Shown in pieces: positions 23,349 to 35,478 of a DNA stretch of 64,000 bases. A program made the position numbers and the translations under genes. This DNA comes from Guillardia theta CCMP2712 (lineage: Eukaryota > Protista > Cryptophyta): assembly GCF_000315625.1 (NCBI RefSeq), contig NW_005434609.1, forward strand, positions 277,864 through 341,863. The letters are read 5' to 3'. Below the pieces are notes generated by a model. That model made no database searches. It was not told the DNA's origin and worked only from the letters and a program-made list of their open reading frames with translations. Each line of letters begins with the position of its first letter. The stretch's first letter is position 1.

Positions 23349-24014
23349 TCCCACCAAACAATTAACTTCATTCCTCTCCTCTCCTCTCCTCTCCTCTCCT
23401 CTCCTCTCCCTTCCTCTCCTCCCCCCAAACTCACATGCTCTCCTCTCCCTCTAGACCTTTATTCTCCTCCTTCCCTTCCTGCCCTCATCCTCTCTTCATT
23501 TCCTCTCCTCCTCCTCCATGTCCCAGACGGCTCTACATCTCCATGAACAGTTGAGGTTACGACCCCAGTACCACCCCGACCCATTCGCTCCCAAAATCTA
23601 AATGGTCTCCACCCCACCCCCTCCCAAATTCACTTTCTCCTTCTACCTACCCTACCTTAATCCCAGTGTTTTATATTTTTCCCCATACCCCTCATACCTA
23701 CCCCTTTGTTGCATGTATATTGAACAAAGCAGCACCCCATCCTGTTTCCAGGGGTAGTGAAGGGGGTGGGTCATTTTTATCCGCACGCTGGTTGGCGGGG
23801 CGTCGGCCTTGATGGCCCAAAGCAGGGCCCGGGGCCCGGACTCCGTCGGAGAATTGCCACTGAGTACGGTCAGTGCCAATTGGACTACGAGCCGGTACGG
23901 ACCCTCAGTTACCAAAAGATATCACTGATCCACGGCATGGTGTAGGCTGCGAGAGAGCAACTTCAAGTTTGAATCAGCGGGTAAAAAAGTTAACCCGCCT
24001 TCAAGTTCGAATGT

Positions 24015-24019
24015 AAAAA
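24015..24019 (-). terminator. Pol III oligo-T terminator downstream of tRNA-Sec (second T6 at 23983-23988)
   Basis: The minus strand reads GGTAATCTTTTT immediately after the tRNA-Sec discriminator G. Confidence 0.7.
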
Positions 24020-24026
24020 GATTACC

Positions 24027-24113
24027 CGCCTCGAAGGAGGAATCGAACCTCTAGGGCGTCAACCCTCACTGGATTTGAAGTCCAGCCCCAGCGCCAGCCA
24101 GGATCATCGGGGC
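24027..24113 (-). tRNA. tRNA-Sec (anticodon UCA), eukaryotic 9/4 fold
   Basis: 87 nt: GCCCCGATGATCCTGGCTGGCGCTGGGGCTGGACTTCAAATCCAGTGAGGGTTGACGCCCTAGAGGTTCGATTCCTCCTTCGAGGCG. It has a 9-bp acceptor stem, long D stem, CTGGA-CTTCAAA-TCCAG anticodon arm, long variable arm, 4-bp T stem and discriminator G, and resembles animal tRNA-Sec (GCCCGGATGATCCTC...). Confidence 0.92.
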
Positions 24114-24118
24114 AAACC

Positions 24119-24191
24119 TGGACAACCCGGGTATCGATCCCGGTGCCTCTCGCATGCTAAGCGAGCGCTCTACCATCTGAGCTAGTCGCCC
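24119..24191 (-). tRNA. tRNA-Ala (AGC)
   Basis: 73-nt cloverleaf GGGCGACTAGCTCAGATGGTAGAGCGCTCGCTTAGCATGCGAGAGGCACCGGGATCGATACCCGGGTTGTCCA, with G3:U70 and anticodon AGC. Confidence 0.97.
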
Positions 24192-24765
24192 GTGACATGT
24201 TACGATCGCAAGATCTTAGGTTTCATGAACATGTTAGATTGGATGGTACTTGTTTGCGTCCATGAGGGTTGGTGAGATCAGAGGGTGGGTAGTATTGTAA
24301 TGGTGTTTGTTCGTGGGAGAGGGTAGCATGGCAATACTTTTTACTTATGTCTTTTACTATAATTTCTTCACGCTGTACCCCTTTTGCTTTCCCAGTCTGT
24401 TGTCACACCGTAGATACCCCTTCATATTCTGTTAGGGTATGACCCACCCTACCTAATCCCACAGCTGACACTCTTCCATCCCTTCCATGCAGATACACAA
24501 GGCTGCGAGGGGCGCGAGTAGGGTGGGAGGAGGAGGAGGTGGTGGTGATGGTGGGGCAAGAGCTGTAGTACGAGGGATACGATCCAACGGGTATCTGACC
24601 TCCTCTAGCTTCTCTGCTCCTATCAGTCCCTGGAATACGCGGAATACCCAATATTCTGTAATTTCCTGTCCTCGCTTCTCTTTCCAATCAGCAACCAGGT
24701 TGCAAAACATTCCCTCAGCATTTCCAAAGTGCTACACTAGACAAACGGTTTCTCGTACACCCATA

Positions 24766-26137
24766 ATGCCAGGAGAAATTCCTACCGTTTTCAACCATCT
24801 AGGTGCACACAAGATGATTGTTGATGTACCAGCGCTGCATAAATTTCCTCGCCGTCATCTGCATTATTCCTCGGAATGCTCTTCTTCCATCAAGAACAGT
24901 TGGACTCATCTCAAGAACAGAGCTGTGATCGAGGTGGCTGGAGAAGATTGTGTTGCATTCTTGCAGGGGTTAACCACCAACGACATGAAGCAGTTGAATT
25001 CCAAGAAGTCCATGCTGACTGCCTTCTTGAACGCACAGGGGAGAGTTATGCACGATGCCTTGTTGGTGTACTCAGAGTCTACAAATTCGGTCTTTATTGA
25101 TGTGGCAAGGGACCAAAAAGAAGATTTCCTCAAGTTTTTGAAACGTTACAAGCTGCGAGCAAAGGTGGTGCTGACCGATCACTCGGAACGCCTCGCAGTA
25201 TACGCGGCTGTGGGTTCAGAGGCGAGTCTTGACAGGTTCACATCAAAATCTAGCCCCCAAGACTGTATGTTGTTTCAGGACCCGCGCCTACGTGAGCTTG
25301 GGGTCCGATTGATCTCTGAAGAAGGGAAACATACACTGTTCACCTCGGCAGCCGGCTTCAGTGAAATCTCGGAGACGCTCTACGACATGTAATGCTAAGA
25401 GCTTGCACGCTCTGGACACGCTCTGATGATAGTTTGTTGGCAGATATCGAATCTCCCTTGGCGTTGCACAAGGTCCAAAGGAGTTGCTTCAGGGCACATG
25501 CTTGCCACTTGAAGGAAACATCGAACTGTTTGGAGGAGTTTCGTTCAACAAGGGGTGTTATGTTGGACAAGAGCTCACAGCACGAAGCCACTTCAGAGGG
25601 CAGGTGAAGTCTATGCCTTCTTTGTCATGTCTTCCGTTGGCAACAGCGCGACGCGATTTTGATGTTTGAGTGACGCTGCAAATTTCAGATACGCAAGCGC
25701 TTGATCCCATTTGTCATCACTGAGAATGGATTTGAAATCAATGATGCAAGCACAGTAGACATTTTGGAAACGGCCATGAAGTTTGACAAAGAAGCAGTGA
25801 CATCTGGTGAAAGCGTCGAGATCGAGGGCAAAGGTGTTGCATGTTATGCTCAATGAGAAATCGCAAACCAGGTTTCCTGACAGCGTGCAGGTTCAATCGG
25901 GAAAGTCATCGCAATGGAGAAGGGGATTGGTTTGGCGATGATTCGACTGCAAAATGCTATGGCAAACTTCGACCAGTTAGGGAAGATTCGAGTGGGAAAC
26001 TACCATGGATCACTGATCCTGCCAGGTTGACGAAACATCGTTGCTGTCTCCGCTTCCTATTAACATTCAGCACAGGATGGTGGGATGGTATTGCTGAGCA
26101 AGAAAGTGCACGACAAATGCAGGAATCAAGCGCATAA
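24766..26137 (+). CDS. IBA57: IBA57/CAF17/YgfZ family Fe-S maturation protein (GcvT-like fold), multi-exon
   Basis: RAVIEVAGEDCVAFLQGLTTND, AFLNAQGRVMHD, LKRYKLRAKV, DPRL..LGVR, LPLEGNIELFGGVSFNKGCYVGQELTARSHFRG (KGCYxGQE signature), GIGLAMIRL and terminal LPGWW. Confidence 0.92.
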
Positions 26138-35117: not shown

Positions 35118-35190
35118 GGGCGACTAGCTCAGATGGTAGAGCGCTCGCTTAGCATGCGAGAGGCACCGGGATCGATACCCGGGTTGTCCA
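35118..35190 (+). tRNA. tRNA-Ala (AGC), identical to the 24119-24191 copy
   Basis: Same 73-nt sequence, followed by TTTCTTTTT terminator at about 35203-35211. Confidence 0.97.
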
Positions 35191-35279
35191 ACCACAGTCA
35201 TCTTTCTTTTTAACTTTCCATGCAACTTGAAGTTGACTTTTCCGACCGTTGAAGATCAGGATGATTTTTTAATCCTTTA

Positions 35280-35478
35280 AACATAGTTAAGTTAAAAATC
35301 AGTACGAGGATAATCAGAAGAGTAGGAGGCTTGACCCTGACCAGTAACATAGTTAAGTTAAAAATCAGTACGAGGATAATCAGAAGAGTAGGAGGCTTGA
35401 CCCTGACCAGTAACATAGTTAAGTTAAAAATCAGTACGAGGATAATCAGAAGAGTAGGAGGCTTGACCCTGACCAGTA
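35280..35478. repeat. perfect tandem repeat, 3 x 66 bp, containing the AGTTAAGTTAAAAATCAGTACGAGG motif
   Basis: ACATAG recurs at 35281, 35347 and 35413 (period 66). Confidence 0.95.

Follow-up and report, generated by a model that had tools for sequence, protein, structure and literature searches.

A tandem tRNA-Ala(AGC)–tRNA-Sec(UCA) locus in the cryptophyte Guillardia theta, probably a dimeric Pol III gene

To our knowledge, tRNA-Sec is the only eukaryotic tRNA whose shape, with a 9-bp acceptor stem and a 6-bp D stem, destroys the internal A box. Dimeric tRNA genes are known mainly from fungi, and plants reportedly have dicistronic tRNA-Gly–snoRNA genes, a finding credited to Kruszka et al. 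in 2003.

The transcription of tRNA-Sec has been tested only in vertebrates, where an external U6-like promoter is used, and in trypanosomes, where Pol II makes the RNA; both modes were named in an earlier note on this DNA and both are documented (PMC2943599). The vertebrate gene has a B box and lacks a functional A box (PMC2943599). Its promoter is type-3-like, with a TATA at -30, a PSE, an activator element and the internal B box (Carbon and Krol 1991, as relayed in PMC2943599). In trypanosomatids, tRNA-Sec is part of a Pol II polycistron and its internal boxes are degenerate (Aeby et al. 2010, PMC2943599).

Expression of the second tRNA in the S. pombe Ser-Met dimer requires the A and B boxes of the first (PMC2566860). 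Spacers of yeast tandem tRNA genes measure 3–17 nt, with a minimum of 3 nt among hemiascomycetes, in which such dimers are common, and Yarrowia carries tRNA-5S rRNA and tRNA-Trp-RUF70 dicistrons (PMC2566860). A 2026 review of algal tRNA genes covers the copy number of tRNA-Sec, not an Ala–Sec arrangement (PMC13578239). No description of a tRNA-X–tRNA-Sec dimer was found in the literature searched, in keeping with the earlier note, to which no such arrangement was known for tRNA-Sec.

Such an arrangement is found in Guillardia theta CCMP2712, in a stretch of 64,000 nucleotides that is referred to as the window and to which the following coordinates apply:

24119..24191, minus strand: leader tRNA-Ala(AGC), 73 nt (ARAGORN and Rfam cmscan, 54 bits against a cut-off of 29)
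24114..24118, minus strand: spacer GGTTT, 5 nt, without a T4+ run (direct sequence reading)
24027..24113, minus strand: trailing tRNA-Sec(UCA), 87 nt, 9/4 fold, G73, B box GGTTCGATTCC (ARAGORN and Rfam)
24015..24019, minus strand: T5 run, 7 nt past the tRNA-Sec discriminator G (24027) (direct sequence reading)
23983..23988, minus strand: second T run, T6, in the loop of a short GC-rich inverted repeat (direct sequence reading)
24192..24486, no strand: intergenic, 295 nt from the tRNA unit to the divergent YgfZ-like gene (direct sequence reading)
24487..25718, plus strand: divergent neighbour, a gene for a YgfZ/IBA57-like folate-binding protein with a GCV_T domain (PF01571, 49.8 bits)
35118..35190, plus strand: stand-alone tRNA-Ala(AGC), the comparison copy (ARAGORN, Rfam)

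The earlier note took the plant tRNA–snoRNA dicistron as its model, but the closest precedent is instead found among the fungal dimeric tRNA genes (S. pombe Ser-Met, hemiascomycete tandems). As in these and in S. cerevisiae tRNA-Arg-tRNA-Asp, the two genes lie head to tail on one strand, separated by a short spacer without a T run; a putative terminator follows the second gene only, and by its sequence the leader has consensus A and B boxes. The locus differs from the fungal dimers in its trailing gene, tRNA-Sec, and in its host, a cryptophyte alga; co-transcription is here predicted from the sequence. The tRNA-led dicistrons of plants (tRNA-Gly-snoRNA) and Yarrowia, in which a tRNA promoter serves a downstream RNA that lacks, or can do without, one of its own across a spacer of 4–5 nt and RNase Z makes the cut, would be alike in these respects. 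In G. theta, however, the passenger is itself a tRNA, so RNase P could cut the junction too.

With vertebrate tRNA-Sec, the G. theta gene shares the 9/4 fold, the conserved B box, the lack of a functional A box and the single-copy state. In contrast to the vertebrate gene, the region of the TATA and PSE is occupied by the tRNA-Ala gene, and RNase P, not initiation at +1, would define the 5′ end. Trypanosomatid tRNA-Sec lacks its own promoter, rides on the transcription of a neighbour and is freed by tRNA processing enzymes, all of which would also hold for G. theta in the reading proposed below. Here, though, a Pol III tRNA gene would be the carrier, and tRNA-Sec has both an intact B box and, directly behind the gene, a Pol III-type T run. 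The Ala–Sec unit is intergenic and divergent from its neighbour, and by these sequence features it does not belong to the trypanosomatid type.

Anatomy and identity of the Ala–Sec locus

ARAGORN and Rfam place both tRNAs alike and, together with direct reading of the sequence, bear out to the nucleotide the layout first described for the locus: a complete tRNA-Ala (24191–24119), the 5-nt GGTTT, a 9/4-type tRNA-Sec (24113–24027) and a T5 run. The 3′ end of tRNA-Sec falls at 24027/8. Its identity, for which a search of 24027–24113 with the Rfam model had been proposed, was established by cmscan with a full-length match (1–91) to RF01852 at 72.9 bits (gathering cut-off 47; E 5e-13). According to the Rfam structure line and folding, the molecule has a D stem of 6 bp with a 4-nt loop, an anticodon stem of 6 bp, a T stem of 4 bp, a long variable arm and the discriminator G73. 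Two positions of the 9-bp acceptor stem, C4.A and U8.U, are not Watson-Crick paired; the U8.U mismatch is present in human tRNA-Sec too. The C.A mismatch lies at window positions 24110 and 24031 (tRNA-Sec positions 4 and 83), where relatives carry A-U or G-C. The cell might tolerate it, C-to-U editing might act there, or the assembly might be wrong at this base.

The leader is by sequence a normal tRNA-Ala that retains the G3.U70 identity pair and shares its ends with five stand-alone copies having their own terminators. The genome contains six copies of tRNA-Ala(AGC) with the same first 7 nt and the same last 25 nt, and each of the five that stand alone has its own T run. One of these is the copy at 35118–35190, which is identical to the leader and is followed by a T3 and then by a T5 at 35207–35211, as the earlier note had held in outline. 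Downstream of tRNA-Sec, the T5 run at 24019–24015 is likely to be the Pol III terminator of the whole unit, and the T6 run at 23988–23983, which begins 27 nt beyond it, is a possible back-up terminator.

Around the window's two tRNA-Ala copies, the flanking sequences showed no extended homology beyond one 12-mer. The near-palindromic 12-mer AACTTGAAGTTG has exactly two copies in the window (0.01 expected), at 23958–23969 on the minus strand and at 35224–35235 on the plus strand. Both lie 30–60 nt downstream of the two tRNA units, on their strand, and a third, shorter copy is present at 23999–24007 (minus strand). Loci of tRNA genes do not generally carry this 12-mer. As a general motif downstream of tRNA genes, AACTTGAAG was rejected after it was not found at other tRNA loci. 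A tandem repeat with a period of about 55 nt, whose unit starts with CATAGTTAAGTTAAAAATCAG, occupies positions 35270–35400 and beyond, immediately past the stand-alone tRNA-Ala; the same unit also occurs on another contig (L012, G000:C190). The best homologue of the YgfZ-like protein is from Hanusia phi (68% identity), and Rhodomonas is also among its best relatives. These homologues come from transcriptomes only and therefore provide no genomic loci for comparison.

The searched genome comprises 87.1 Mb in 669 contigs, and 24113–24027 is the sole tRNA-Sec found in it. The next Rfam matches reach at most 42 bits and are all of tRNA-Ser size, and a loose signature pattern for tRNA-Sec matched once, at the window locus, with no match in the control. 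Another, independently promoted tRNA-Sec gene, named at the outset as a finding that would count against the arrangement, was thus sought by covariance model and by signature pattern across the 669 contigs, and none was found. The genome encodes SepSecS (423 bits), SelD (290 bits) and one protein of the KTI12/PSTK family, an assignment at the family level that does not tell PSTK from KTI12. A GPx gene has a TGA exactly at the catalytic residue, where its paralogue has Cys. A search of the genome for eEFSec with the bacterial selB model, which proved not to be discriminating, returned generic GTPases only. Of the Sec machinery listed in the earlier note, SecS is present as SepSecS, PSTK is matched at the level of the KTI12/PSTK family, and for eEFSec the matches are generic GTPases. 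A published survey lists 14 selenoproteins for G. theta (PMC7539508). The genome demonstrably uses Sec, and since no other tRNA-Sec was found, the gene in the window must be expressed.

The SelD match (L009, G000:C2:790396-794325) is part of a 962-aa open frame that greatly exceeds the length of SelD by itself and may encode a fusion protein. The Sec-GPx gene (677350–677673, plus strand; L098, G000:C23:675850-679173) is located about 700 nt from a tRNA-Ala(AGC) copy (676587–676659, minus strand), a proximity that is probably a coincidence.

The juxtaposition of tRNA-Ala and tRNA-Sec by chance is excluded, because the locus holds the genome's only match of tRNA-Sec grade and tRNA genes very rarely form close tandem pairs in this genome.

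Terminators, promoters and a second dimeric tRNA gene

The rules of termination were derived from 60 loci of the same genome, sampled with their flanks and containing 62 tRNA genes. In 61 of the 62, a run of T4 or more occurs within 41 nt of the 3′ end, at a median distance of 8 nt. This first run is a T4 in 12 genes, a T5 in 40 and longer in 9, making T5 the commonest terminator length (40/61) and giving 49 genes a T5 or longer. An isolated T3 precedes the real T run in nine genes and a T3 never stands alone, which indicates that T3 is not used as a stop. The judgement that the T3 of GGTTT is too short for a typical Pol III terminator is upheld by these counts, both by the T4+ runs after 61 of 62 genes and by the nine cases in which a T3 is passed.

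The sole gene without a T run (1/62) is a tRNA-Thr(CGT), and it is itself the leader of a second dimeric gene. It is followed by a 12-nt spacer without a T run, a tRNA-Ser(CGA) and then a T6, and a TATA is located at about -35 of the leader:

G000:C45 about 202310–202480 (L037:60-360; also L104:1466-1633), minus strand: Thr–Ser dimer

Besides the dimer, tRNA-Ser(CGA) has one stand-alone copy (L103:1475-1558). Because the Thr–Ser pair is a second such gene, the organism possesses dimeric tRNA genes. In pattern scans, Ala–Sec and Thr–Ser were the only close tandem pairs above chance in the genome; a three-motif pattern scan returned Thr–Ser alone above chance. The notion, drawn from a pattern with two B boxes, that Ala–Sec is the only close pair of the genome was rejected: the pattern was too strict and missed Thr–Ser.

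Other tRNA loci of the genome carry conserved extensions. In all four tRNA-Asp(GTC) loci (L064-L067, 150–325) they are found on both sides: a leader hairpin at the 5′ end and, at the 3′ end, a trailer of about 35 nt containing a hairpin that precedes a T5. Compensatory changes are seen at six pairs. These extensions look like structured elements co-transcribed with the tRNA, similar to Yarrowia RUF70. The tRNA-Phe copies (L074-L077) share a 3′ trailer of about 40 nt before the first T run, and the copies of tRNA-Lys CTT (L039-L044) and tRNA-Ile GAT (L029-L032) have conserved 3′ trailers of 13–15 nt; in all of these the farther flanks differ.

A TATA at about -31 is present in 38 of the 62 tRNA genes, against a background of 3%. 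Such a TATA resembles the upstream element of plant or S. pombe tRNA genes. None occurs in the Ala–Sec unit over the 60 nt that precede tRNA-Ala, nor in several of the tRNA-Ala(AGC) copies. The genome's single U6 gene has a TATA at about -26 and, being one gene, gives no consensus for comparison.

The promoter capacity of tRNA-Sec itself was assessed with a weight matrix for the A box, derived from the 62 tRNA genes, using shuffled sequence as a control. The B box of tRNA-Sec matches the consensus perfectly, and no A-box match was found with the matrix at the canonical place. The best A-box-like 8-mer lies at +18, about 47 nt before the B box; its score of 5.9 falls short of all 62 tRNAs, whose minimum is 7.5, and is no higher than shuffled sequence can reach. 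The tRNA-Ala gene occupies positions -6 to -78 relative to tRNA-Sec, so that neither a TATA at -30 nor a PSE can exist there. Consistently, the vertebrate-type pair of a TATA (about -30) and a PSE (about -55 to -70) is not present before tRNA-Sec, and the point that no space is left for an upstream promoter of its own stands. The putative 183-nt precursor is predicted to fold as two separate cloverleaves.

tRNA-Ala–tRNA-Sec pairs in metagenome relatives

A metagenome was scanned with a pattern drawn from tRNA-Sec alone, which yielded six contigs. Two of them, from uncultured relatives, repeat the arrangement on one strand: in L019, tRNA-Ala(AGC) and tRNA-Sec are separated by a 50-nt spacer, and in L017 by a 33-nt spacer, with tRNA-Sec cut by the contig end. 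Both tRNA-Ala genes keep G3.U70 and show compensatory acceptor-stem changes relative to the window. The relatives' tRNA-Sec genes likewise differ from that of the window by compensatory stem changes, and score 70.8–73.9 bits in Rfam (window, 72.9). The flanks of the L017 and L019 pairs are unrelated, and the two contigs represent distinct species with functional genes. In L019, the A-box-like word of tRNA-Sec, TGGCTCAG, scores 8.5 and is of consensus grade.

Each of the two longer spacers contains a T4 run. Given that T4 is the first T run in 12 of 61 genes in G. theta, tRNA-Ala transcription in L017 and L019 may terminate, at least partly, before tRNA-Sec.

Three further contigs, L015, L016 and L018, belong to one GC-rich organism, and no tRNA was detectable in them upstream of tRNA-Sec. 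They share with the window the divergent YgfZ-like gene, at a similar distance, and in L015 this synteny is borne out by collinear exon matches; no YgfZ was found within 1.6 kb in L017. A relic tRNA-Ala before the L015 tRNA-Sec, proposed by ARAGORN at very lax settings, was not supported: the E-value mode of Rfam returned nothing, and the alignment was no better than with shuffled sequence. On the sixth contig, L014, no tRNA was found upstream of tRNA-Sec either. The idea that tRNA-Sec would lie directly 3′ of another tRNA in relatives thus held for L017 and L019 (33 and 50 nt) and failed for L015 and L014. Further relatives were sought in genome contigs and viral contigs, where the search gave no matches. 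In a sequencing run of another organism, 47% of the sampled words of 24015–24200 (186 nt) are present, a share larger than one of the two tRNAs by itself could account for.

The 40 nt before tRNA-Sec in L015 (2040–2082; also in L016 and L018) contain a B-box-like GAGTTCGAATCCC at -21 to -9. The same three contigs have ATTTTTG at -33 to -27, where the TATA sits in G. theta tRNA genes, and L014 has GCAAAATCG at a similar place. This A/T element of L015 and L014 may be an external element for tRNA-Sec.

The Ala–Sec adjacency is common to three taxa and is not universal. The leader was either gained within cryptophyte relatives or lost in the lineage of L015. Since L015 has no upstream tRNA-Ala, tRNA-Sec is evidently expressible without it in the wider group. 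Taken with the longer, T4-bearing spacers of L017 and L019, this makes dependence on tRNA-Ala plausible for the species and unproven for the clade.

Proposed expression of tRNA-Sec from the Ala–Sec unit

We consider it probable that the locus is a dimeric Pol III gene of the yeast type: the tRNA-Ala promoter would drive tRNA-Sec as well, and RNase P and RNase Z would free it. TFIIIC, bound to the consensus A and B boxes within tRNA-Ala(AGC), would place TFIIIB upstream of this gene, and Pol III would start a few nucleotides before 24191. Meeting no terminator in GGTTT, the polymerase would read through, transcribe tRNA-Sec and stop at the T5 run at 24019–24015, giving a precursor of about 180 nt. 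With a spacer that lacks a terminator, read-through into tRNA-Sec would be unavoidable once tRNA-Ala is transcribed. The two tRNAs would then be separated by RNase P, acting at G1 of tRNA-Sec, and by tRNase Z (or 3′ trimming), acting at the tRNA-Ala discriminator. In this scheme, the 5′ end of tRNA-Sec would be processed and carry a monophosphate; vertebrate tRNA-Sec is said, from work by Lee et al. in 1987, to start at +1 and to keep its triphosphate. What the sequences establish is the layout of the locus, its being the only tRNA-Sec found, the use of Sec by the genome, the terminator rule, the Thr–Ser dimer and the recurring pair; from these we infer a joint transcript, its cleavage into two tRNAs and a need of tRNA-Sec for its leader. 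The central proposal of the earlier note, that tRNA-Sec uses the tRNA-Ala promoter, is favoured in G. theta by the 5-nt spacer without a terminator, the lack of room for a TATA and PSE and the lack of a usual A box; the T4-containing spacers of the relatives and the syntenic, Ala-less L015 speak against it.

The main rival to a shared transcript is that, in the vertebrate manner, Pol III starts tRNA-Sec at or near its own first base. TFIIIC would then contact the B box together with the A-like word of the D arm, with TFIIIB over the 3′ half of tRNA-Ala; read-through would be incidental, and the adjacency inherited rather than needed. This would suit the L015 and L014 genes, which have no upstream tRNA, and the L017 and L019 spacers with their T4 runs, T4 being able to serve as the only T run after tRNA genes here. 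The unit's lack of the TATA that 38 of 62 tRNA genes have at about -31 counts against the shared transcript. An independent start is also favoured by the combination of a perfect B box with an A-box-like 8-mer at +18 that is of consensus grade in L019. In the window, however, this word scores below all 62 tRNAs and within the shuffled range, and a TFIIIB at about -30 would overlie the tRNA-Ala B box, occupied by TFIIIC. Moreover, tRNA-Ala transcripts would enter tRNA-Sec in any case across a spacer without a terminator, and the trailing gene of the S. pombe dimer is not independently started (PMC2566860). On balance we regard an independent start as unlikely, while noting that both routes could coexist.

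Two other explanations appear far less probable still. The pair might be made by Pol II within a longer transcript, for example by bidirectional or read-through transcription from the promoter region of the YgfZ-like gene, and be excised by RNase P and RNase Z as is trypanosome tRNA-Sec. Its position about 300 nt upstream of a divergent protein gene and the missing tRNA-type TATA would fit, but the B box, degenerate in trypanosomatids, is conserved here, the leader, with its consensus boxes, is a tRNA gene of the ordinary kind, and a T5 run lies 7 nt past tRNA-Sec as at other Pol III genes of this genome; we give this origin very little credence. It is just as hard to believe that the tRNA-Sec of the window is a decaying or unexpressed copy and that the functional gene resides in an unassembled part of the genome. 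The assembly is in 669 contigs, and C4.A stands where relatives have Watson-Crick pairs with compensatory changes. Against this, the gene scores 72.9 bits, as high as its relatives (70.8–73.9), all its other stems are intact, neither the covariance model nor the pattern revealed a second locus, and the Sec machinery and the Sec-GPx gene are intact.

A broader reading of the locus and its relatives suggests itself, which we judge about as probable as its converse. In a cryptophyte lineage, tRNA-Sec would have given up its external promoter and become a passenger of tRNA-Ala(AGC), a third mode of expression. The spacer would act as a dial: in the relatives, a leaky T4 within 33–50 nt would let part of the polymerases through, and with the collapse to 5 nt in G. 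theta the dicistron would have become obligate, at a 1:1 ratio, with RNase P generating the 5′ end of tRNA-Sec.

The Ala–Sec locus would extend dimeric tRNA genes to a cryptophyte. The spacers of 5, 33 and 50 nt, together with the leaderless relative, form a natural series for terminator leakiness and promoter dependence, and the unit would offer a ready-made Pol III cassette for small-RNA expression in the context of a transformable alga. If the proposed mechanism is true, RNase P processes the 5′ end of tRNA-Sec, and by borrowing a normal tRNA promoter this tRNA would have found a third, very economical answer to the A-box problem.
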